From positions 16,058,001 through 16,122,000 of the forward strand of contig CM106586.1 in the NCBI GenBank assembly GCA_048013815.1: 64,000 nucleotides of DNA. The letters are read 5' to 3'. A program made the translations under genes and the position numbers. Below the pieces are notes generated by a model that was given only the letters and a program-made list of their open reading frames with translations, searched no databases and was not told where the DNA came from. Within the stretch, counting starts at the first letter, position 1, and the number at the start of each line of letters is the position of its first letter. The DNA comes from Setoptus koraiensis (lineage: Eukaryota; Animalia; Arthropoda). Shown here one piece after another: positions 41,527 through 62,515 of the stretch.

Positions 41527-41579
41527 TTGTCGCTCTTCTCTCTAACGGTACCTGTTTACCTTTATTTCTTGTTTGTGTT

Positions 41580-41613
<34 letters not shown>

Positions 41614-42214
41614 TGTGTGTATGTGTGTGTGAGTGTGAGAGTGTGTGTGTGTATGTTCTAATAGATTTTACCAAAATAAATAAATAATTAAAAATACTGA
41701 ATATAATAGTAATAATAATAATAATAATAATGATGAAAAATGTGTGATTGATTAATTAGTAAAAAGGGCGCCTACACGCACTCCCGCACACACGCACACA
41801 CACACACACCCGCACGACGCACAACACACACTCACACATACTCACACGCACACCGTCACACATACATAATGTCGGAGACTGGTACGGTCCATAGGAGTAC
41901 ATATAGAGACACATGCTTCATGGCAGTCAATAATAATTACAGTATTGGATTTGTAGTGATGGTAATAATATTAATGAGATAAATTAGATAGAATTATCGT
42001 TAGCTATTTTCAATTATCACTAGTTGGTTGCTTGGCTGATTGATTGGTTATCATAATCAATCGTCGCTTCTAGGGCACATTTATGCGTCGACGGCAACGA
42101 CGGCGACGACGACGTTACATGGCGATTGAAAGAAGAGAGCGAGCGAGAGAAAACTTTGTCAAGCCCACTTTGCCAAGACGACACATACATAAACGTGTCC
42201 CTGTCTTATTGTCT

Positions 42215-43338: not shown

Positions 43339-46300
43339 GCTCGACTAATAAACAACAGCGCACACAATCATGGATATTGTAGTATCATTGGCATTATTAT
43401 TAACATTACACTGCGGCGACGATATCCCGGCATGTCGCTGTTGGCGCACCAGCCAGCGAGCTGCCCTTGTTATCTCGCTATCTAGATCGGCTGAACCATT
43501 GTGTCACAATTGTGTGTATCACAGTTCCGAGCGCCACACACGCAAACATCGCCATGGTGAGGCCCTACAAGCAAGAACAAGTCAGCGCCATCAAAACTGA
43601 AACTTTATTTACTTGTCACACGGAGGGATATTTCCCATTTGGTGACACACACACACACACGCACGACAAAAACTAAACCAATCTAATCGCGCTCGCGAGC
43701 TACCCCAACACACACACACACACACTCAATTTTCCATCCTGAAGCCTTTGCTGCGGCTCGCCATCGCTGTCACGACGGGCGTCGTGTCGACGGTGGCGCC
43801 CAGACGCCGACCGCAGCGGCGGCGGGCGCCGCCGGACCGACCGGCCCGGCCGGTCGGCGCTGCACAAATGTCACACAAACAGGCAAATTAAACCAAAAAC
43901 CGGCCGAGATTGTCGCTGTTGTGTTTCAATATCGTCGATGATCTTCTGCGATCTGCATGCAGCAGCATCGCTTGCCCGTCAACCGGCCCGCGGCTAGCCA
44001 CGGGCCAATCGAGTTGCCGGCCGCGACGGGCCGACTTGATTATTTATTGAGACGATGATCTAATCGCGCACTAATGCATTATGCCAATTGAATTCACCAG
44101 TGGCCACACAAACGACCATGACAAAAGCGCTTGTTGTGGTCCCTAGGCGACATGTTGGCGTGCTAAATTGTGCTCCGTCGTAAATTGTGTCCGAATGCGA
44201 TGCGCCAAAAGCAAGCCGGCAGCTCAATGTCACCATAAATAAACTGCGACAGCCGGTTTGTGTGGCTGTCATCACTTGACCACGGGGCCAGATTTGCGGC
44301 GGACTTTTGCGGGTGGCTGTTGAACTCTTTGGACGGTCGCTTTTGACAAGTGACTCGTCGTTCGGTTACAACTAACAAATAGAGTCACAACCGAATGCGA
44401 AGACGTGCTCGCATATATACGAGACGAACGGAAGACACACACACACACACACATCATGTAATGATGACGATGTTATCTGTGCCATTAACACAACACAATC
44501 GCAACGCTCATGTCATATCTGTTCTTTTTGGGTCGGCTCGCAATACCACAATATATCACCGAATGAGATCAGACATGACGGCAATGGCCAACAATGGTGC
44601 CATCATCAAGATAATCGAGTCGCCGCAATCTAGCGCTCGCGATCTCTCTCCGTTTGGCCGACTGACCGCACGCTCGCTCCGGTCGCTCCGGTCGCCCGTC
44701 CACCAGTCATCTGACCGTTTGCTGCATACGGCGGCGACTATATGGCGGCGACTATGTGGCGGCGACTATGTGGCGGCGGCGACGACGACGATATAACAAT
44801 GATGACGCAACGTTAGTGTGTCAGCGGTGGGCGCTGAGAGATTGGCAGAGATTGCCGAGATTGGCCACTGCTCGACTCGCACTGCGAACTGCGGTTATGA
44901 CACAGCTCGGACATACGGCGACTCACATACAACACTGATACAGCACGACACTGACGCAACGTAACGCTGATGCAACATACGCCACGGCCAGCCAGCCCGA
45001 TGGGGCCAGAGGGGCCGTGGGGCCGGTGGCACAGAGTGCAGCAATTAGCATAATTGAAATCACATCAGTAGCCATCAGTGGTGCGGTAACACGCGGAAGC
45101 CGCGTGCAAGATACGGCGCCGGCCAGCGATTTCGGCCACCAGTGCTGCCCGTTGCGTAATGTGCGCGATCGCATTACACTAATGCGACATGAACATTAGA
45201 GAGACTATTCACAATTGTCAGCAATTCATTTGCTTGTGTGTCACACATTAACAAGTAAGTGTTATGTAAGCGCAGTGAGCGCTCATTGAGTTGCACAAAC
45301 ACGGCTCACGGTTTCATAATTGTTTCAACTTGTTGTTGTTGTTGTTGTTGAGCCGGCGCTCACATAACATGGTGCCTCCCCCCCCGCACGCTGTTTATAG
45401 GCTCGGCTCGCTTGGCGCACTCACAAACGAATTGTGCTCAAACGATGGTCAGTCAACAGGGTCTGGCTAACAATTGTTGGTCAGCCAGACACAATTGGTC
45501 ACTCGATTGTCGATCGTGCCGACCGTTCAGTCGATTACTGTTACATCACAATTGCCACACATCTATTATATGTAACTGTCAATTATTGTGTGACACACAC
45601 ACACACACACACACATGACTCGACAGTGCAATTCGACCGCCATCTGACATCTTGTGAGCTCAACCGTGACAGGTTGTTGTCGGGCGGCGCACCCCAAACT
45701 TGTTGTTGGCGTCGTGGTCGTTGGTGTGGTTGTTGCCTCGTGGTCGTTGGCGTGGTTGTTGCCTCATGGTTGTTGCGTCATCGTTAGGCACCCCAGTCAC
45801 GTTTGGCGCGCAACTTGCGCCCGGGGCAAACACTCGCCGACTCGCCGACTCGCCGATTCGCCAACTCGTCGACTTGCCAACTGACCAACAGGCCGACTTG
45901 TCGACTCGGCTCTCGTGCCGGCCGACCGGCCCACTGGCACTTGGCGGGGCCTCATGCTAATTCGAACAACAATGAATTGATCGATACCGTTGCCGGGCTC
46001 AAATTACCGCACGCTCTTGCCGCCAGTCGTCGTGCTCGTGTTACACACAGTGGCCAGTTGCGTTCGGCGCCAGTTTGGCCGGTCAACCACAATCGCAACC
46101 GGCCGAAACTGGCCACATGTGGGCGGCAAGTGTCGCACGTATCGCAAGTGCAGTTGTCACCTTTGCGCCATTGCGCAAACACTGACACAACAGCACATTT
46201 GTGCCATTGTGTGCCTAATTGTGTCACACAATGGCGAGTTATGTAACTCGCTGCAGAACTCTCACAACTACTATGTAAGTAACTGGCGCTCGTAGTTCGT

Positions 46301-49300
46301 GGCGACACAGGTAGACAGACAGACAGACGGACAGAGTCGCTGTCACAGAGAGAGAGAGACGCGCACTGATTACGTAACGAGTGACCGGCAACGCACGGTG
46401 TGACCCGTGCAATCGACAAAGACAGACTGTCTTTGTCGTAACATACAGCTCGATTTTGCTGGCCCGTGTTTGCCGCGGTGCCGCTGTGTCAATTGGCGCT
46501 CCGTGCGCCCGTCAAATGGCGCCCGTTAAATAAGCGCCACTAACAAACTGTAACAAACTGTAACTAAACATTGCGGCCCGCGCTGGCCGTCGCTGGCGGC
46601 ACCACCGAGTTGCGGTTGATTTGCGGCGGCCCGACGGGCCCACGATGGGCACCGCCCGCGATGCCGCTACACGCCGAGCTGCACGCTTGAACGCGCTCAA
46701 AATCGCGATTTGGCGCGCGCGCGCGATACCATCATGCACAGATTTTCTCGCTGCCGCCGAACCGCCGACTTGCTGGCTGCGTCGCTTGTGTGTCCGCTGT
46801 GCGCCGCCAATTGCGCTCACTGGGCGCTCACGGCGGCTCGCCGCCGTCCGCGGGCCCCAATTCAATTGGCAAACCAAATTGGTTGCTGGTTTCGCACGCG
46901 CTGGCGCTGCGTGATTGGGCGCGTGCCCAGAATTCGCCAGTCGTTCCGGCGCCGCCAACGAGCCAACACGAAAGCGACCAAGTTCGGCCCTGAACTCTCG
47001 GGGCCCCTCGGCCCCCGAGTGCCAGCCAACAATGTTTGCTCGCTAATGCTGGCTTGAGATCCGCCAAGATCCTCGCCGGCTCCATGCTCACCTACGGCCT
47101 ATAAATGTATAACTGTGTGCGTGGCCGATACGCGGCGCATACATGTAGCGCCACGTACATGAACTGGACGCGACCAGTCGCCTTTGCAGCAAATTGGCAG
47201 TCGCGTCACGGCCACAACAATCAATAAAAGCGATGATTGGGCCCGTGTTTGCGTTGCATTGGGCGCCCTCGCATGACCGGCAACATTTATCACTGGCCGC
47301 GCGGCTGAAAGCGAAGCCCCGAGCGCTGGCCGCTGTTTGAAAATTTCAACTTTAGTGGTGTCATTAGAGGACGATTAGCGGATTGGCGCTGTTGTTGTTG
47401 GCGCTGTTGCCGTTGTTGTTGTTGCCGCTGTTGTTGTTGCCGGTGCGGTGGTTGTTGATGTTGCAGTTGTCGGTGTTGCGGCACGAGTGGCGACATTAAC
47501 GACGACGCCGCTATTAGGCCCGAAATGGGACCGCTATCAGTTACGCTGTCCGCGGTGAAGAGATTTGCTCGCCAGCCATTCGTTGTTGTTGTTGTTGTTG
47601 TTTGCCAGTCAATTGTTGGGCACAATTGTTGCCACACACCGACAGCCCAGCGAACCGGCCGACAGCGCCGCTGCAAGGCCACCCGGTGGCGAGCATCCGT
47701 CGCGTAGCGGCAGCCGGACAAAACGGAAGCGTCAAACGAAATAAACAATGCTAATCCATTGATTGATACTTATCACGCCAGTGTGCGCGTCTGTGTGCGT
47801 GTGATTCCTCTAGGGCGACACGGACGACAACAAGCGACTAATGGTTGCAATAATGCGCCCCGTTATAGTGGTCATAACAAGCGTTGAGCGTGCGTATCGC
47901 GTATCAACGACAACGACAACAGCGACAATAGCGACACCGACACTGACGACAACGAAAACAACAACAGCGACGACAACAGCGACGACAACGACAATATCGT
48001 GCTATACTTGTGCGACCACTTGAGAGGCATTTATACATTTATTTGTAGATGCGTTTGTGCTCGCACAAGGTGATATTTGTGCGCGGTCTTTGCGGTTTGT
48101 GCTCGCTACAAAACTGTGCAACTCCGCAACAAAACTGTTGCAGTGAACCGGGCACGCCGACCGCGTTCGACGAGCCAGCTCTGGGCGCCACCGGCGCCCG
48201 GGTCAACGAACCTGCCCGCCCGCGCTGATTAACGCTGCCGGCCACTGATTAACGGGCCGCCGACACACAAGTTCGGGCCGGACAAATTGTGTCGAATTGC
48301 GCCTTTCATGGCCGCAAACAATCTCGCGTCGCTGTTGCGGTCACACTTGCGATCACAACAACGACAGCGACGACGCCAACATCGACGACAGCGACAACAG
48401 CGACGAGCTCTCAACCTTTTGACCACTCGTCACGGCCGGCCGACAGGTAAGCGGCGCGGTTGTTGGCAGCCGCAAGTGGCCGACAAGCGTGCCCGCAACC
48501 GCTCAGCCAACCAGCGCCAAAAGAATCGCGGCGCCGAGATGGCCGACGCGGCCGGTTGGCCGGCGAACAACCGGCCACTAGAGGGGCGAAAGGGTGCAGA
48601 CGACCCGACGCCAGCCACACACCGAGCCGGCGAAGGGCGCACAAATATCGCGTCGTATCGCACACATTTAATCGCATGCATTATCCATGGGCGTCCACGA
48701 TGGTTGTCGTGCGGTAGCTCGCGCCTAGCGCCACAATAATGCTCAGCGGTTGCTCGGCGCACCACTGATTCACAAAAGAATAGGCTGCCGGGCCATCGGG
48801 CTACCGGGCTGCCGGGCTGCCGGGCAGCATTCCAGCTTTGTGATGCACCGCGAGGGGGGCACTAGGCCACTCACATGCACACACACACACACACAATGGC
48901 CACAATTAGCCGACGATACACCCACGCACTTGCACAGCGCGCGCGCGCTGCATACCTGAGCTGTGCGCGCTGCATACCTGTGTTCATCCTGTGCCGCTAT
49001 GCTCGCCGGGTACCGCTATACTCGCCGGGCACCGCTATGCTGGCATGTCCGTGCAATTCTTGCCATGGCCTCATACCTGGCACGGACGGTATGCATCATG
49101 CGTTGCACGCTGCGCGACCCGTTATTGTTTGCGACGGTGTTCGTGTTTACACGGCCGACAGGCATTTAACTCAATGTTTATGTCGCTGTGCGCCGGTGCG
49201 TGGGCGTCATTAGTGGGGCGTTAGTGCTAATTGGAGCAACGGTGCTGGCTACTGTTGCCGCCATTGTGTGCGCGCCGCACGTCCCGTTGGGTGCTGGCCG

Positions 49301-52300
49301 GCGCTGGCCGGTGCGGGCTGGTGCAAGATGATGCGGGCTGGTGCGAGCTGATGCGGGCCGACGGGCGACACGCAGCAACAGTGTCGACACATGACGACAA
49401 CAATAGGTAGAGGGCCCGTTGGGGGATGGACGCGTTTAATTTAATCATTGATCAACCGGTGCCAATGGCTGGCGACACCATGTCTATGGCCGAGCGCCGC
49501 CAGTGGCCACTAGAGGAGCAACAGCGACAACAAAGAAATCCCTCATTTTAAACACTGTTGTCATTGGTGTTGACAAATTTCGCCACTTCTTTTGTTGTGC
49601 TGCATTGTTCGGCGGCGGCGGCGGCCAACGAGTTCGATTCGAGCCGATGCCGGCCAACGGGACGGCCAATAGAGCGGCCAGCGGCCGGCGAAACAGCCGA
49701 GCAACAGGAATGCCGTGCCGACCAACGCGGTCTCTCAGGTGGCTGCTGGCTCGAATAGCTTTCGAATACCTTTGGCGCTGCAATGCCACGGCCACTAAGA
49801 CTGTTTATCGGCGGCCATTATTCATTGGGCAGCACAGATCAATTCTGGGCCAAAATAGAAATTCTGGCCGAATCAGTTGCTGGCCCTATGTGGTTGTTGT
49901 GGCCGCTGTTTGCTCTTCTCTGTTGTTTACCGCTTGTTGTCCGCCATTTAGAACATTACAACAACAACAACAACAACAACAACACCACTGCAGCCAATCA
50001 CAGCACAGGTAAGTGTGTACCAGTTATACTGCTGATGCATACTGATACTGTAATCTGCCCATAATCTTGCGAGACTCGCCGTAGACACAAATGGAGCAGG
50101 CGATTCGAGCGGCCCTTTCGGCAACCAACAGAATTAGCAGCTAGTATCTTAGGAGGATGAGAAAGGTGTAAATTAGCGCCTAATGGAGCGCCAATAGATT
50201 CACGATTGGCAATTCGCGATCCGCGACCCGCAATTCGCGACCAACAAACCATCGCACCATCGGACCAAATAGACACTGGTCGCTGCTTTGATGCCGGCCG
50301 TTGCTGGACGCTCAAATGAGTAGGATAATGGCGCGCCGTGGATTATATTTAGGTGACAATTGTTGTTGCTGTTGTGGTGATAGACACTATTCTGGTGCAA
50401 ATGTTTACTCACTATTGGTCGGCTGGGTTGAGAGCCGAACAGCGCCAGAGAATAGTGTGAGTAAGTAAACAAATACTCACAAATATCATCATTGGCCATC
50501 ATTCAAAGCAGCAACACTGCACACTGCACAATGGGGCCAGTTGCATTGCACTTGGAATGTATTTATTCTGTCCAAAGAATATCGATCGATTTCGCTCATT
50601 TCGACCCAATAGCCCCCGTCTTACAATTGGCCGTTGACAAATTCTAAGTAGTGCTGTTCTCTAAATGAACGCATCCACACACACACAACTACACAAATTA
50701 ATCTCATCAGAGAGAAAAACCCGACCGCTCTCATTCAATGATCAAGTGGCAATTGTGCTGTTACACAAGTGGCCACCATTTGCAACCCAACGATGCACCA
50801 ACTGTCCCGTTTGCTGCCAATCAATTTCAATGAATCTGAATCAATCGTTTCGATGCAAAATAGAAAAAGCTAATAAGTGATGAACGCCTCCTGTTGTATG
50901 TATGAATAATAATAATGATGATAATCTTGTACCAACTGATATTGCCACTAATACGGCGAGCCTCTGTATATTCCTTTGCAGGGTACATATGGTACCAGGC
51001 TGGCGCAATAGCAGCATGTAGGGTACCTTACGGTGATTCTGGCTCCCACTCTCTCGCTTATTATTCTTTGCTTTTATCTCTTTATTTGCTTGTAATACCA
51101 ATAAATCCGTATCAACAGTGCACAGTGAGAACAGTGGCGCTTGCAAAAAGATTGATCGCCGCTGTCATTATAACTTATAGGCGAATAAAAAACGATTGAT
51201 CGATATGCGAGCGATTTTTTATAGTGGCAACACCATTGGAATGTGTCTGGAATGCCATCAAAAAGAAGAAACCCAATAGTCACCTAATTCTCTGGGCCCG
51301 GCCCGGCCCATTCCAACCTATACAAGATAGACGCCAGACTAATTACAGTCGATTAGTGAACGAATGGTCGCCCTCATCCTCGTTTTACCTGTTGTAATGC
51401 GTGTGACATTTATGTAGAATGTTCTACCATCGTTGTTGTTCTTCGTTCCAAGAATTTTAGTCTGACAGAAGTCTTCGTCTCGTTGATATATGCTCAACAC
51501 TACAGCGGTTGAGTATGTAGTTGAGATAAATCAAGTAAGTGGTGCCATCCAGTCTGGATACGACAACGTCCAGCGTCGACACGATATATAGGCTCGGTGT
51601 GCCGTTCGACCACAATACTGGCATAACAAACAGTGTAGTCTGAGTGAAATTACAAGCGCTGCCAGCAGTGTCGCGTGATGCAAATCATTAAGGGCGCCAA
51701 ATAGAGGCCAAATAGAGGCGCCCCAGAAGCAATAAATAGGCGCTGACGAATTCATATATTCATGTCTATACGTGTGTGTGTGTGTGTGGCGCGAGATCAT
51801 TAGGGGCCAGTCTGTTAGTGACGCTGGTAGCATCGGATTATCTCACCGCATCACATCGTGGCTGGCGAGAATGATCATGTATCATTTACTAAATTCAATG
51901 CAGTTGTTTGTTTATACCCCTGTAGCCAACTACACAGAGACAATATAGCTGGCACAGTAAATGGCGGCCAGAGTGTTGGTGTTATTTGGCGTCGACGAGT
52001 CACTTAAATTTTGCAACTTGGACCTCACGAACCAAGTAAGCAACTTTCATTTGTTGTTGTCATTGTTGTAACTGTCGCATTGACCATATAGAGTATATAA
52101 GCGAGACACGTGACCTAGTGGCTAGTTAGTGAGATAAAAGCAAACAGAGAGAAAGAGAAGAACAGATTTTAGGTAGTTGATACGTGCCAAAATGGTCATG
52201 CCATACACGACATCATTAGCAGGCGGCAAAGCCTGTGGTCACGATTACACAACAACAACAACAACGACAACTAAACAAGTAATTGTTGTTGCTCGCTATT

Positions 52301-55340: not shown

Positions 55341-55517
55341 ATGGATAGCATAGCCCCCGATTGTAAAAAGCTGAAATTAGATTATGATAGTTGCTTCAAT
55401 TCTTGGTTTTCGCAAAAATTTCTTAAGGGACACACAGAAAACGAGTGTGATTTATTATTTAAAAGCTATCAGGCCTGCATCAAGAAAGCTCTAAAGGACC
55501 ACAAGATAGAAATTTAA
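55341..55517 (+). CDS. TRIAP1: TRIAP1/Mdm35 twin CX9C mitochondrial lipid-transfer partner (58 aa; below the ORF-track cutoff)
   Basis: [58 protein letters not shown]; C8-x9-C18 and C36-x9-C46; YDxCFNxWFxxKFLKG signature; strong Kozak aacATGg. Confidence 0.93.
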
Positions 55518-58500
55518 TGAGTCGAATCAGTTATCAACAAATTATTAATTTAGACGAAGCAGAATCTAATCAAACGTCAAACAGGAGGAGACACAGAGCC
55601 CGCCGCAATACGCCATCATTTGTCTGTGGGTTTTGGCTTCATTTATTGCGCTCAGTCACTTGCTTTATATTATATGTACCAAACAAAATGGGCCAAATAT
55701 TTTCTAGAAGAAGGAGACAATTAAAATCGCGCATAATACACATTGGCGACAATGGTAAACATCATCATGATAAGAATTCTACCAAATTGACAGCAGTCTC
55801 CTCCACTATATCCACGTCCTCTTCAACATCATCCTCGTCCTCATCAACTTCAACAAGCCAACATCGGCAACTCAACTACTACAACAGCCGATGCAATCAT
55901 CATCATGGGGGCTCCTCATGTAGCAAAAATGATCGCTATCCCCCTAATATCATTCGCAATCAAAAATACAATATTATATCATTCTTACCAATAGTGTTGT
56001 TCAATCAATTTAAATTCTTCCTTAATTTGTACACATTATTAATGGCCTGTTCACAATTTATACCTGAACTATTGATTGGATATTTCTACACTTATTGGGC
56101 ACCATTAAGTTTCGTATTAGCTGTGTCAGTTATAAGAGAGGCTGTTGACGATTTGCTCCGATACAATCGTGACAAGGCAGTCAATTCTCAATTGTACCAG
56201 AAGCTCACCTCAAATGGACCAACTGTCATACCGAGCTCCAAAATTCAAGTTTCCGACCTTATTATGGTCGAAAAAGACCAACGTGTGCCTGCAGACATGA
56301 TACTTCTTAGGACAACAGAAAAGAATGGATCTTGTTTTGTTCGCACAGATCAGCTTGATGGTGAAACAGATTGGAAGCTTAGACTAGCCATATCAACAAC
56401 ACAACAGGTCGAGTCTTGTGACGAATTTTTCAATCTAGATGCCACAATCTATGCCGAGGAACCTCAAAGGGATATCCATAGCTTTACTGGAAAATTTGTT
56501 TCTGGCAAGACAAACTCTGAAGTTGCACTCTCCATTGAAAATGCACTTTGGGCCAACACGGTTATAGCTTCTGGCCAAGCTGTTGGAGTAGTTATCTATA
56601 CTGGTAGTGAAACAAGAAGTGTCATGAACAATCTCGAGGCTAGAAGCAAAGTGGGCTCATTGGATCTTGAAGTCAACGACATCACAAAGATATTGTTCGC
56701 AGCAGTCGTTGTGTTAGCCTTTGCTATGGTCTTCTTACAAGACTTTCACGGAGCATGGTATCGTTATTGGTTTAGATTTGTATTATTATTCTCATACATT
56801 ATCCCGATAAGCCTTAGAGTTAATTTAGAAATGAGTCGAGTTGTTTACTCATATATGATCCAACGTGATATGGAAATTCCCGGTACTGTAGTGAGGACCA
56901 CAACTATTCATGAAGATCTTGGTAGAGTCGCGTACGTCTTGACAGATAAGACAGGAACTCTTACACGTAACGAAATGGTATTCAAAAGAATACATTTTGG
57001 CAAAGTCTCATACACACCAGAGTATTTCGACGAGGTCGCCGCTATCCTCAGAACAGCATTCGCTCCCCCTTCATCCAAAGCAGGCACATCAAATAATGTT
57101 GGTCACAAAAGAGATGGGAGCACTGCCAGTGTAGCCAGTTTCATGGAAAGACGTCAGTTTCAACCGAGACATTTGCGAATTGACTCCTATGAAATCGATC
57201 GAGATACGATCTATAGACTACACTCTGCCGTCCTAGCTTTAGCCTTATGCCACAATGTCACTCCATCCTATGAAAATGAGTTTGACAACATTAGTAATTC
57301 ACAAAACGGCAACAATGAAAACGCCCCAGATGGTCAAGCAATCCCACTAAAACCAAGAGGAATGACTTATCAAGCCGCAAGTCCGGATGAAGTCGCTCTT
57401 GTTCAATGGACCGAACGAGTTGGCGTAGCTTTAATTGATCGCGACATAAGTCATATGAAACTAAGGAACCCTCACGGTCAGAATATCAAGTTTGACATCT
57501 TACAAGTGTTTCCTTTCTCATCCGAGACAAAAAGGATGGGTATCATCGTCAAGGATACACAAACAAATGATATTTTGTTCTTGTTGAAAGGTGCTGATGC
57601 TGTAATGTCTCATATAATTCAGTACAGTGATTGGCTGCAAGAGCAATGTGATAACATGGCTAGATCAGGATTGAGAACTCTTGTGGTTGCTCGTAAGGTT
57701 CTATCTCATGATCAATACAATGATTTTGAATCAAGATATACTCAAGCTAAACTCAACTTAACCAACAGACAAGCGAGAATGAGTGAAGTCATCGCAACTT
57801 TAGAAAAAGATATGGAACTTTTGTGTCTGACAGGCGTCGAAGATCGTTTGCAAGAAGGTGTTCCTACTACACTGAAGGGACTTCAAGATGCTGGTATTCG
57901 CATTTGGATGTTGACTGGAGATAAGATGGAAACTGCAATCAATGTGGCTAAGTCTTCGCAACTTGTGAAAAAGATGCAAGAAGTATATCAATTCAAACCC
58001 ATCAAGAATCGTGTCGAAGCTCATTTAGAACTCAATAACTTTCACCGTAAGAGCGACTGCCCTCTAATTATAGCCGGCGAGGATCTCGAACTATGTCTGA
58101 AGTTTTATCCATGTGAATTCATGGAACTTGCGTGCCAGTGCTCTGCTGTAGTGTGCTGCAGGTGTACGCCAACTCAAAAAGCTGAAGTTGTGAAGCTTAT
58201 TCAGAACAGATCAGGCAAAAGGACTTTGGCTATCGGAGACGGAGGTAACGATGTTTCTATGATACAAACAGCCGATGTTGGGGTAGGAATATGGGGCAAA
58301 GAAGGCCAGCAAGCATCTCTTGCAGCGGACTTTTCTATAATGCAGTTCAGCTATATCTACCGATTGATCCTATTGCACGGTCGTTATAGCTACAAACGGT
58401 CAGCAGCCTTAAGTCAGTTCATTATACACCGTGGTCTCATTATCTCAACAATGCAAGCTATCTTCTCATCAGTTTTCAATTTTGCATCAGTGTCATTGTA

Positions 58501-59023
58501 TCCGGGATTTTTGATGATTGGATACACAACAATCTACACGATGTTTCCTGTCTTTTCAATCGTTTTGGATAAGGATGTTTCACCTCTATGCGTGATGCGA
58601 TACCCTGAACTATACAAGTTGATGAAAGGAAGATCCTTGTCACTCAAAACATTTTTCATATGGGTATTGATAAGTATATATCAAGGCGGTGTTATCATGT
58701 ATGGAGCTATGCTACTATTCCACGACGAATTTATTCATGTTGTAGCAATCACCTATACAGCATTGATTCTGACTGAACTACTTATGCTAGCCTTGACAGT
58801 AAGAACATGGCATTGGATGATGGTAGTTGCTGAGCTTATTAGTTTATCTTCCTACCTCCTGACGTTGATCTTGTTTCCTCAATCCTTTGATGCCCAATTC
58901 ATACAAACGAAGGACTTCTTATGGAAGGTCACATTATTGACTATCGTTAGTTGTCTACCCTTATATGTTTTGAAATTCTTGCATCACAAAATAGCTCCAG
59001 CTTCACATTACAAGTTGACGTGA
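55517..59023 (+). CDS. ATP9B: Class II P4-ATPase phospholipid flippase ATP9A/B (Neo1-like), intronless, 1168 aa
   Basis: [11 protein letters not shown] (phospho-Asp), TGDK, GDGGND and IPISLRVNL; N-terminal FVCGFW...RRRRQLKSR resembles ATP9B. Confidence 0.96.
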
Positions 59024-59254
59024 ATTATAAGAATATGTGAGAATAAAAAAAAATCAAGTTAAGATGGCAAATTACATTCAAGATAGTTCTTATCATTCTT
59101 TAGAATGGCTGATTGCGTTTTATTGGTTGACGTACGAGGGCACACATGAAGCTCTAAGTTACAGTCTACAACGTAGTGTACCTGAATAAATATTATTTAG
59201 TTTCTCTATCGCCTCTCAGGCCACTGTTTTGCGAATTTCCATCGTTAGTCAGCA

Positions 59255-59445
59255 TGTGAGTCCTCTAAACGCCTTCCTCGACCCCAATTGTGACTACTGG
59301 TTGATGAGGCGGTCCTGTTTACACCAGGTGCGGTGAATGGTACTGTTCTTGGTGGCTGAGGCCCAGCTGCTACATCATTATTATTATTATTGGGAAAGTA
59401 TGAGTGCGATATTTGTGCAGTTTCTACCAAAGTAATTCCTTGGTG
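59255..59445 (-). pseudogene. Derlin-1 C-terminal tail fragment (SHP box)
   Basis: TLVETAQISHSYFP...HNWGRGRRLE resembles the Derlin-1 tail ending HNWGxGxRLG; no Derlin TM-coding sequence upstream. Confidence 0.65.
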
Positions 59446-59469
59446 ATTCCTGGAAGGATTCATCATCAT

Positions 59470-59779
59470 TCTGTTGCCTGCCGTTATAGTTGACACCAGC
59501 AGGCTTCTTTCCTGAGCGACTCCTTGTTTGAATTTAAAAGCATACCTAGATGTGGTATGGCGTTATAATCGACGATTATTTGTTTTTGATGACCATCTCC
59601 AGTTACAATGGGAGAAGATCATCAAAAACAAGTCATCGGCGGCTTATACGACTTGTTGTGATTGCATTGTGATGCATTAGTAGGTCCACTAAGCGTCGAC
59701 AGATGCCAGCGTTGATGACGGCTTGTATCTTTTCATTGGGTCCATCGCATAGGTATGATAAAGCCTGGCATGTGTAGAA
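59470..59779 (-). pseudogene. Importin-alpha (KPNA1/5/6 class) ARM-repeat fragment with frameshifts and fold-back insertions
   Basis: [34 protein letters not shown] / [38 protein letters not shown] / VSTITAGNR in three frames. Confidence 0.9.
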
Positions 59780-59918
59780 CATACCTATGCGATGGCCCGA
59801 ATGAAAAGATACAGAGTACTTCAAAATCGTCGTGATTCAAGAAAAGCAGAAGGCATTTTGATCAAGTTAAAGATATCGCCAATACTGGTATGCGATATCT
59901 TTAATTCGATCAAAATGC
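59561..59918. ncRNA. Cluster of three long hairpins (candidate miRNA/hpRNA precursors)
   Basis: Inverted arms 59561-59600/59611-59650, 59724-59757/59780-59813 (32/34 match) and 59853-59879/59892-59918 (25/27 match). The structure is certain; expression is not. Confidence 0.5.
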
Positions 59919-59980
59919 AGGTCGGTGATAAGTGATGAAGCAGTTGCCACTGATCTATTATCGTTGACTTGTGTTAACAT
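59880..59980 (-). pseudogene. ATG-started fragment resembling the Aquarius (AQR) N-terminus
   Basis: MLTQVNDNRSVATASSLITDLHFDRIKDIAYQYW; DRIxxIAxQYW recalls the AQR N-terminal motif, but the match is short. Confidence 0.35.
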
Positions 59981-61297
59981 TGTTTGTATGCTTTTTTGTA
60001 TGTAAATGATGACATGTATGTATAAAGTCTGACCTCATCTTGGTGTCATCTGGGATGTTTCGTTTCAATAATTAAAAATATATTTGTTTAATAAAAGTCC
60101 ATCTTTGACATCTTTGTGAGAAGACAAGTAAGGCAGGCACAATAGAAGAGTGAATTTTCAATAACGATTAATAACGATTTTTCAATCGACAATTGGTTCA
60201 ATTGTCGCCTCGAGGACCGTGGGCTCACAAAAGTTGTCAGAAGTTTGTGAGTGAGCCATCGTTTTCGTCTTGTAAATGTTAGCTGGTCGTCTGTGAGTTG
60301 AACAGAGCGACCTCTGGTGCTGGATGATGACACGGAAACAATTTTTCTCGGTTTGGCCAATAGGGCCTATTGGCAATAGGTATTGGTTGCACCACATGAT
60401 TGTGCATGTACCTTGTATCTTTCAAAATACTGTACCATGTACTAAACATGTAGCCTGATTGCTGGCACAGCGTACTCTAGTGGCAGAAAACAAACACTTT
60501 TGTGCAGCACAGCAGCAGCAGCAGAATGAGCGGCAGCAGTAGGGCAAACATGAAGCATAGAAGGGCCAACACAGTACAGGGTGTTGCAATCAAGTCTGCC
60601 GGCCATAGAGCACGGTGTGCCGCACACGAGCACAGAGCGTAGATTTGTGTTCGCGTGTGCCGTTGCCGTGTTGTTGGCCTGGTGAATGGTAAGCGGCACA
60701 TGACTAGTACAGTATGCACTGTGCGTTGTGTGTTGGAGCACGAACTGTGCCTTGGCTGTGATGCGTGTGCATTGGCGAAAATGCACCGTCTAGGGCAGCG
60801 CAACATAAACAGTAAGAAACGGGAGAATCGATCGAAGCACCTTGTAGCTTCTACAATAGAGCGCATATAGTGTGCACCAACCAAAAATAATTACTGGCTT
60901 ACCCAATAGTTGCAGATTCCACGCTATAACACCCTGCACTGCCAGCGCTAATATAGTAAACAGTATTTATATGTTAGTGTGTAGACGAAAACAATACTGT
61001 CTGTACGCCAGTCTGTCTGTAACTGATTGATATTACACCTGATATTATTACTATTATTATTACTACCGTCATCGTCATTATTATCCCCATCATTATTACT
61101 ATTATTATTACTATTGCTACCACCATCGCTACCACCATTGCTACCAATACATTGTCAACGCCATCATCACCACTATTATCCTGACTTATTATTATATATA
61201 TATAAATATTAACGCTACCATCGCCCGGATCGTAATAATATATTATCAGACATTGTAAGACCGCACCAGCACCGCTTCTACTACTACTACTTCAAAT

Positions 61298-62515
61298 ATG
61301 AAGGCAAAAAATCAAACTATTTCTAGCGATGTCGAGGCTAGAGACAAATTGATTATCTACGTATACGAATATTTGCTTCACAGTGGCTCTAGGAAAGCGG
61401 CACAACTATTCTTGGAAGAAATTAACTATGAGAAAAACATACAAGCCTCCGAATCGCCTGGCTTCCTTGTCAATTGGTGGTGCGTCTTCTGGGATCTATA
61501 TTGTGCGGCCCCAGACAAACGAACAAATCAAGCAGAACCCTCTCAGGAAGCCAGAATGTTTCATGAATTCACCTCACATACACACAGGACAGGCTTATCG
61601 CCACAACCATCACCACATAATCATCAAATGATGCACCAGCAACCACCACCACCGCCATCATCATACATGCGATATGGCGGACAACCGCAGCCACCGCCGC
61701 CACATTCCGGTCAAATGAGAGGAGGCCCCGGCCCCATTATTAGAAATATGCACGGCCCATTAGGGCCAGCCGGACCTCATCCACAAATGGATCAGTTTGG
61801 ACACGGACCGGGAGGCCCACCGCCGCCGCACGCCAGCGGACCCTCACTAGGGGGACCGCCGCCGCCTAACATGGACGGATTAGGTCGATCGGGACCCATG
61901 TGCCCCGGTGGCTCTCATAGAGGGCCCATAAATGCGCCCCGTGCTCAACACCCTAATGCTTATGCTCCTATGGGCCCGCAAAGAGGCGGACCAATGGGCG
62001 GAGGAGTTGGCGGTTGGCAAGGTAATTCGAATGTAAACTACAATGTCAATTCTCAATCACCTGCCGGGCAACCCATCTACGGACCTCCGCAACCAGTTAC
62101 AGGAGGCGGACCAGGAACGCCTGGCATAATGCCAAGCCCACAGGGTTCTGGTCCATATTCACCAGCAACAACTGCACCTGTCAGAGACACTACACCCAGT
62201 AGCCAAGATGGCGGACAAGGAATCTATATGATGAAAAATGTACCTAGTGGAAATCCCATGGGCCAACCTAATTTTGGTCCCATGAGCGGACCCAGCGGTA
62301 TGGGCTCGATGATGATGCCGGAAAACATGATGGAACCGGTGAAAAGTTCTCCAGCTTCGCCTAGACCTGATGATTATGCTATCCCTAGTTATGACCAAGA
62401 GAATGATCAACAGAGTGAATCCGCTGAGGTCTTAAAATTAAAACAGAATTTACAGGAGGAAGCCAAAAAGCTTACGTACGATAAAGAACAGACAAACGAG
62501 TACGACACGTACTGA
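61298..62515 (+). CDS. Ssdp: Single-stranded DNA-binding protein Ssdp (SSBP2/3/4 family), intronless
   Basis: LUFS/LisH domain ARDKLIIYVYEYLLH..GFLVNWWCVFWDLYCAAPDKR, Pro/Gly/Met-rich middle, acidic C-terminal end. Confidence 0.96.
   Translation: MKAKNQTISSDVEARDKLIIYVYEYLLHSGSRKAAQLFLEEINYEKNIQASESPGFLVNWWCVFWDLYCAAPDKRTNQAEPSQEARMFHEFTSHTHRTGLSPQPSPHNHQMMHQQPPPPPSSYMRYGGQPQPPPPHSGQMRGGPGPIIRNMHGPLGPAGPHPQMDQFGHGPGGPPPPHASGPSLGGPPPPNMDGLGRSGPMCPGGSHRGPINAPRAQHPNAYAPMGPQRGGPMGGGVGGWQGNSNVNYNVNSQSPAGQPIYGPPQPVTGGGPGTPGIMPSPQGSGPYSPATTAPVRDTTPSSQDGGQGIYMMKNVPSGNPMGQPNFGPMSGPSGMGSMMMPENMMEPVKSSPASPRPDDYAIPSYDQENDQQSESAEVLKLKQNLQEEAKKLTYDKEQTNEYDTY

Follow-up and report, generated by a model that had tools for sequence, protein, structure and literature searches.

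The window, that is the whole stretch of 64,000 nucleotides analysed here, contains three tandem hairpins within a spacer of 2.3 kb, which raises the question whether these hairpins form a young small-RNA locus or are traces of the process that created them. The spacer extends from an ATP9-like P4-ATPase ORF (55517-59023, plus strand, intronless) to an Ssdp-like ORF (61298-62515, plus strand). All three hairpins sit on the minus strand within a mosaic pseudogene of about 1 kb (59069-60084), so called here on the evidence of its parts, which are described below after the hairpins themselves.

The hairpins and their rarity in the window

A first-pass annotation had placed three tandem hairpins in this spacer and read each of them as a fold-back duplication of a captured coding fragment, with importin-alpha and a splicing factor resembling Aquarius (AQR) as the source genes and presumed targets. 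Their positions were confirmed by a repeat search, in which all three inverted repeats were found:

59561-59650, no strand assigned: hairpin 1 (hp1), with template arm 59561-59600, loop 59601-59610 and inverted copy 59611-59650 (40 nt)
59570-59600 (left arm) and 59611-59641 (right arm): core of hp1, 31 nt with 5 mismatches, 84% complementary, loop of 10 nt
59724-59813, no strand assigned: hairpin 2 (hp2), with template arm 59724-59757, loop 59758-59779 (22 nt) and inverted copy 59780-59813; 34 nt, 2 mismatches
59853-59918, no strand assigned: hairpin 3 (hp3), with left arm 59853-59879, loop 59880-59891 (12 nt) and right arm 59892-59918; 27 nt, 2 mismatches

In a gapped alignment hp1 could be stretched to about 59559-59652, with arms of about 42 nt of which about 10 of 42 positions differ. 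The stems measured about 40 bp (imperfect) in hp1, about 37 bp in hp2 and 27-28 bp in hp3. The canonical shape of a pri-miRNA, a stem of about 35 bp with a loop of at least 10 nt (PMC10710096) between single-stranded flanks, was found in hp1 and hp2, while hp3 is short. The predicted folding was reproduced on both strands, with z-scores against shuffled sequence of -5.8 for hp1, -10.0 for hp2 and -8.5 for hp3 that were about equal between the strands, and each hairpin folded separately within one context of 421 nt.

When the 64-kb window was scanned for hairpins (score of at least 16, loop of up to 60 nt, low-complexity sequence excluded), three hits were returned, which were hp1, hp2 and hp3. 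No equivalent hairpin was found in 30 first-order Markov simulations of 64 kb, so neither the hairpin structure nor the clustering can be ascribed to chance. In addition, a (GT)n tract was observed at 41570-41866 opposite an (AC)n-rich tract about 130-190 nt away, a low-complexity inverted repeat which dominates generic inverted-repeat searches of the window.

No Rfam family matched at its gathering score in the whole window, and when matches in the region 57-62 kb were ranked by E-value the best reached 20-24 bits against gathering scores of 56-80. A 24-mer across the hp2 junction gave 0 hits in a metagenome scan.

A derlin shell with an importin-alpha core

The pseudogene is composed of a shell the size of a derlin gene and a mosaic core of importin-alpha pieces. 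Its parts, all on the minus strand, are as follows:

59069-60084: chimeric pseudogene as a whole, derlin gene-sized shell with importin-alpha mosaic core
59069-59244: copy of the derlin 3'UTR, with a minus-strand AATAAA at 59124-59119
59245-59460: derlin C-terminal coding remnant (QGITLVET...HNWGRGRRLED), SHP-box-like, with the stop codon at 59245-59247
59461-59468: filler of 8 nt at the importin-derlin junction; the importin parent departs at 59469 and derlin similarity begins from about 59460
59469-59609: importin-alpha ARM piece ending in STITAGNR, with a 4-nt deletion at 59495 (PDB importin-alpha, E about 1e-20; Pfam Arm, E 2.7e-9)
59651-59779: importin-alpha ARM piece of 43 aa (PDB importin-alpha, E about 1e-19 to 1e-20; Pfam Arm match)
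59814-59861: importin-alpha ARM piece of 16 aa, from its translation, from the loose end LNHHDAEVLG of the parent and from comparison with P0153 and P0071
59922-59974: piece that is most likely the importin-alpha N-terminal linker (TQVNDNRSVATASSLIT), with 2 differences from the parent contig
59975-60035: filler of 61 nt, with an ATG at 60015-60013 that is possibly the derlin start codon
60036-60084: copy of the derlin 5'UTR, with stops in all three frames; the parent contig has 2 differences and places it 589 nt upstream of the QGITLV codons

The derlin remnant ORF (83 aa) had a single relative in the database, P0151, which belongs to the Pfam DER1 family (PF04511), at 76% identity over 73% of the ORF. 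Its conserved tail, ...HNWGRGRRLED, is taken by us to be the SHP box. Parents of the pieces were sought in the Logan contigs of four runs, all of which behave like genomic DNA, by alignment to positions 58000-61300. A derlin parent contig was present in all four runs, matching 59098-59444 at about 89% (38 differences, 4 indels) and again 60036-60084 at 96%, and its flanks diverged from the window outside about 59069 and 60084. The reading frame of the derlin parent, once reconstructed, is open. Between the shared anchors the core measures 589 nt in this parent versus 591 nt in the window, and 589 nt corresponds to a leader of about 20 nt plus about 190 codons, the length of a derlin up to QGITLV as counted on a relative (contig L001). 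The coding core that was exchanged amounts to about 550 nt. We know of no repair model that predicts such a near-equal core length.

The derlin copy retains its 5'UTR, C-terminus, stop codon and poly(A) signal, and probably also the start codon as the ATG at 60015-60013, upstream of which the copy extends for about 68 nt. At 59444-59469 and 59952-60084 the junctions of the mosaic are spanned by contigs that carry exactly the window version, which excludes an assembly chimera as its source.

The ATP9-like gene, whose stop codon ends at 59023 and which is followed by AATAAA at 59042-59047, stands tail to tail with the derlin-derived unit (end at about 59069), with almost no spacer between them. 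Convergent transcripts of the two could overlap. Just upstream of the derlin-derived 5'UTR in the minus sense, a perfect tandem duplication, AATAACGATT AATAACGATT, was observed at 60161-60180. Further away, a GC-rich block at 44000-50000 (GC 0.53-0.585 vs about 0.40 elsewhere) contained only short GC-rich tandem repeats, and neither an ORF of at least 250 aa nor an Rfam match.

Contig L001, which holds the derlin hit P0151, was tried as the derlin parent and dropped, since just 7 of 36 variant sites were shared; it is a more distant relative and not a parent from the same genome. The flanks of the derlin parent, matched against it, gave nothing. The derlin of this related mite has an intron (L001, 2136-3046, two ORFs with about 100 nt between them), whereas the derlin parent described here appears to be intronless, with its 589 nt between the anchors, and this is consistent with a lineage-specific intron loss. 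Massive intron loss has been reported for eriophyoid mites (PMC7738191), with which the long intronless ORFs of the window agree.

The contigs with the nearest ATP9 orthologues showed 92% identity at the amino acid level and about 75% at the nucleotide level. When L002 (5544-7146) was compared with window positions 59024-61297, ATP9 was found to have an intron there, and the genes downstream of it code for a WD40 protein and a V-ATPase proteolipid instead of Ssdp. In these nearest-relative contigs (about 75% nucleotide identity) no comparable locus was found downstream of ATP9, a different gene being present there; synteny 3' of ATP9 is not conserved in the nearest relatives. An exact look-up of the ATP9 protein of the window returned no record.

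As for the importin-alpha core, its two long ARM pieces are collinear with residues 277-314 and 326-363 of yeast SRP1. In the first of them the importin frame runs from 59609 to 59495 (38 aa), is then shifted, and ends with STITAGNR. The parent contig over 59469-59545 has 2 differences and an extra CAGT, and it continues as AGNRTQIQ, which is canonical importin; the frameshift near 59495 thus results from the lack of this CAGT in the window. Over 59673-59775 the parent contig has 7 differences and continues to the code for LNHHDAEVLG without the right arm of hp2. The pieces for which a parent contig was available (59469-59545, 59673-59775 and 59922-59974) were 93-97% identical to it, a range that takes in the template arm of hp2 and leaves out the arms of hp1 and hp3.

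The coding content ascribed to the arms was reproduced by translation, with importin in hp1 and hp2 and HFDRIKDI in hp3. The AQR-like identity given to the last of these (ORF 59867-59980) was dropped, as the ORF had no PDB match at E<=10 and no Pfam family and as the flanks of its parent are importin-like. The PDB includes human Aquarius. The parent contig of this piece translates as ADEMSDDVID, TQVNDNRSVATASSLIT and EEMVAAIQQD in succession, and R[NS]VATA followed by ITxxM[IV] is found, likewise in this order, where the IBB domain ends in KPNA1/5/6-type importins (with weak E-values), which are also the nearest to the ARM piece of the window. Judged from these similarities, the piece most likely derives from the same importin-alpha parent, as its N-terminal linker, and the splicing factor would then fall away as a second target. 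Read in this way, all three hairpins come from one gene.

A protein search with the 43-aa piece for the importin parent returned distant importins only (at most 82% local identity), and a homologue search with a 63-aa ORF returned three importin fragments, all from other organisms. Self-BLAST found no source copy of the locus within the window. In two runs the importin parent contigs on 59673-59775 were about twofold deeper than unique sequence nearby (218 vs about 90-145 in one of the runs), and from this depth two near-identical importin-alpha copies could be present in the genome.

Anatomy and decay of the inverted copies

The anatomy is clearest in hp2, whose right arm is a 34-nt insertion. 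The EVL code of the importin runs to 59814 and the importin codons resume at 59779; deletion of 59780-59813 brings back the reading frame. This inverted copy is missing from the parent contig, which passes from 59775 straight into the EVL code. Beside the insertion five consecutive bases differ (CACCA in the parent vs AGAA..G in the window), and no microhomology is evident at the switch point, where the parent sequence is limited to loose ends of 30 nt.

For hp1, 41 nt (59610-59650, made up of the inverted copy and the loop base before it) occupy a place where about 24 nt are expected. Importin alignments agree with the earlier observation that the inverted copy stands here in place of about 8 codons (PALRxVGN), and they suggest that the copy is absent from the parent. 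The third hairpin is situated where the ARM piece meets the N-terminal piece, two pieces between which the mosaic lacks about 150 codons of the parent, and its copy would be absent from the parent as well. Importin-like codons (SKC, possibly ISLT-SKC) overlap the left arm of hp3, and going by this weak protein similarity the left arm is probably the original and the right arm the copy.

In hp1 and hp2 the arm with the lower coordinates is the one collinear with importin, and the copy follows 10-22 nt after it; hp3 probably has the same polarity. A common polarity of this kind is the signature of one nascent plus strand that grows from low to high coordinates and snaps back. Each inverted copy coincides with a mosaic lesion, either an indel or a junction, and within about 600 nt there are at least 4 further junctions, the fillers of 8 nt and 61 nt and the 5-nt mismatch cluster at the hp2 insertion. 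The proposal of fold-back duplication of adjacent captured coding fragments is thereby upheld, the parent contig being demonstrably without the hp2 copy. Snap-back templated insertion, which the same annotation had mentioned as its neutral alternative, fits this anatomy better, with the copies at indels or junctions and all of the same polarity (in hp3 probably).

The decay of the arms was then compared with that of the pieces around them. Arm against arm, the pooled core arms of hp1-hp3 differ at 9 of 92 positions (9.8%), while the importin pieces differ from their parent at 11 of 233 (4.7%) and the derlin part at 38 of 347 (11%), and any dating rests on about 30 substitutions. Neutral arms are expected to show about twice the pseudogene's own share of the divergence from a constrained parent, which is about 7-8%; the observed value is compatible with this, and the arms show no excess of complementarity over the neutral expectation. 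The differences in hp1 are spread across both arms, each of which keeps importin-like residues (GDG..II vs GED..VI). Arm mismatches are mostly transversions, and wobble pairs favour neither strand. In these small counts there was no sign of selection for arm pairing. Divergence is higher in hp1 (5 of 31 in its core) than in hp2 and hp3, and the locus possibly records more than one event.

Explanations of the locus and their meaning

The account that we favour, at slightly better than an even chance, is that the hairpins are not genes but scars of serial template switching with snap-back synthesis, by which a chimeric pseudogene was formed that is now decaying. It builds on what was observed directly, namely the mosaic, its parents, a parent contig in which the hp2 copy is missing, and the common polarity. 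According to this account, a derlin copy of about 1 kb would have landed tail to tail behind the ATP9-like flippase gene, and its coding core would have been replaced from an importin-alpha template by a repeatedly switching polymerase (MMBIR, polymerase-theta or TSM-type). The growing strand would be the plus strand of the window, extended from low to high coordinates. Three times it would have run 10-22 nt past a fresh stretch, snapped back and copied the reverse complement of that stretch (40, 34 and 27 nt), after which synthesis would have returned to the importin template, further along by 5 nt at hp2, by about 24 nt at hp1 and by about 150 codons at hp3. A frame-broken mosaic pseudogene would have resulted, followed by neutral decay. 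Presumably this took place in a single event, through a polymerase of one of these kinds, and the product presumably has no function.

Template switching explains the clustering of three hairpins without selection. Several points stand against it: the hp2 switch point shows no microhomology; typical polymerase-theta inserts are shorter than 34-40 nt, and copies of that length lie at the upper end for its snap-back insertions; the higher divergence of hp1 would allow for more than one event; the near-equal length of the exchanged core (589 vs 591 nt) is left without a model; and with the 5'UTR, the stop codon and the poly(A) signal of derlin all kept, transcription is possible. An origin from a TE or MITE was rejected, as the arms consist of importin coding sequence, terminal repeats are lacking in the flanks and the flanking contigs have a depth like that of neighbouring unique sequence.

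The closest known mechanisms are template-switch mutations (TSMs), polymerase-theta snap-back insertions and MMBIR (PMC10710096, PMC4912351, PMC5068794). As in TSMs (four-point model of Loytynoja & Goldman; PMC10710096; bioRxiv 10.1101/2021.04.15.439925), a stretch 10-22 nt away was copied in inverted form in one step, and a hairpin of pri-miRNA size arose from unstructured sequence. Each copy is the reverse complement of nearby sequence, as template switching implies, at 10, 22 and 12 nt from its template in hp1, hp2 and hp3, respectively. Unlike the TSMs, the locus combines three copies with inter-gene template jumps in a mosaic of about 600 nt. With polymerase-theta snap-back (in cis) insertions (PMC4912351, PMC5068794) it shares deletion-insertion scars, an insert that is the reverse complement of its flank, fillers of a few nucleotides and clustered junction mismatches. 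It differs from these in showing no clear priming microhomology and in having also used a distant template, namely another gene, which is nearer to MMBIR/FoSTeS.

Co-oriented fragments of unrelated genes, short fillers and broken frames are likewise shared with mosaic pseudogenes, from which the near-equal length of the foreign core (591 vs 589 nt) and the three fold-backs set the locus apart. Such chimeric or mosaic pseudogenes are known to result from serial template switching (MMBIR/FoSTeS, and the chimeric retrocopies of the L1 type).

A reverse-transcriptase version of template switching is a live rival, although an unlikely one. Reverse transcription would have begun on derlin mRNA, moved over to importin-alpha mRNA and then returned, and the first-strand cDNA would have primed itself three times, giving a chimeric retrocopy. 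Self-primed hairpins are a classic behaviour of reverse transcriptases. All the pieces are co-oriented, the plus strand has the polarity of a first-strand cDNA (3'UTR at low and 5'UTR at high coordinates, with the copies 3' of their templates), and the limits of the derlin copy at 59069-60084 resemble the ends of an mRNA, from the 5'UTR to just past the AATAAA. However, neither a poly(A) remnant nor a target-site duplication was found at 59069 or 60084, and the return to the same mRNA at a matching offset would be unexplained. The usual test by introns is impossible here, as the derlin parent is apparently intronless (589 nt for about 190 codons).

Quite unlikely is also the function proposed by the first-pass annotation, that of a young polycistronic hairpin-RNA locus (proto-miRNA or short hpRNA). 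Its transcript, made from the minus strand between the derlin 5'UTR and the derlin poly(A) signal or by read-through on the plus strand, would fold into three hairpins of Drosha/Dicer size, each with one arm antisense to importin-alpha mRNA. For hp1 and hp2 both stem and loop agree with the rule of about 35 bp and at least 10 nt, and the hairpins fold independently. The three parent-matched importin pieces, hp2 template arm included, are 93-97% identical to the parent, and the derlin 5'UTR, ATG (probably), stop codon and AATAAA were retained. The eriophyoid A. lycopersici has Drosha, Pasha, Dicer-1, Loquacious and an expanded AGO/PIWI set, and is without Exportin-5 (PMC7738191), and events of the TSM type are documented as a source of new miRNAs (PMC10710096).

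Yet the arms decayed at a neutral rate, with mostly transversions and with wobble pairs favouring neither strand; hp3, with 27-28 bp, is short for Drosha; and with about 68 nt before the derlin ATG a promoter is not assured. No Rfam family matched, and the sole run listed in the RNA search, which covered a limited set of runs, is of unspecified kind and has contigs like those of genomic DNA. The base rate is low as well, with 18 stringent miRNAs from more than 6,000 suitable primate TSM hairpins (PMC10710096).

The arms come from a protein-coding gene and the compared pieces of the locus are 93-97% identical to their parent, in likeness to hpRNAs and young plant miRNAs. Both of these reportedly arose by inverted duplication of the target gene, as is said to have been described for Drosophila hpRNAs by Okamura (2008), Czech (2008) and Wen (2015) and for young plant miRNAs by Allen (2004). 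Drosophila hpRNAs have stems of hundreds of bp, which yield Dicer-2 siRNAs. Unlike these, the locus has stems of 27-40 bp, too short to count as long inverted repeats. A small-RNA function of the locus is unlikely on the whole, and it is more doubtful still that one template-switch burst was the one-step birth of a polycistronic miRNA cluster within the derlin shell, with arms antisense to the importin-alpha parent.

It is improbable, too, that three separate template-switch mutations gathered over time in an unconstrained pseudogene. In its favour, hp1 has arms of greater divergence than hp2 and hp3, and TSMs are frequent in other genomes (PMC10710096), but three of them would have fallen within 360 nt while the remaining 63.6 kb, non-coding DNA included, received none, and they would show one polarity throughout, each at a mosaic lesion or junction.

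No window-version short-read contig was found over 59665-59951 in the four runs, where hp2 and hp3 are supported by the assembly only; with the tool used, a hole of this kind proves nothing, and we suspect that the assembler removed a minor path, by graph simplification, next to a parent path of twofold greater depth. An artefact of assembly or amplification, e.g. fold-back chimeras from whole-genome amplification or long-read errors, which could draw on this hole, is very improbable, since the arms contain 2-5 mismatches where a fresh artefact would be perfect, and exact contigs span the mosaic junctions.

If the hairpins are only scars, as serial template switching implies, the locus is a well-preserved natural fossil of that process, in which 600 nt record three snap-backs, several jumps between genes, fillers and a cluster of mismatches. 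Since the same genome allows each of the two parent genes to be identified, it would be useful for inferring the repair or replication pathway that operates in the extremely streamlined genomes of these mites. If the locus is expressed, one mutational event could make a whole miRNA-like cluster against a parent gene, and the model that leads from TSMs to miRNAs would be extended from single hairpins to clusters.
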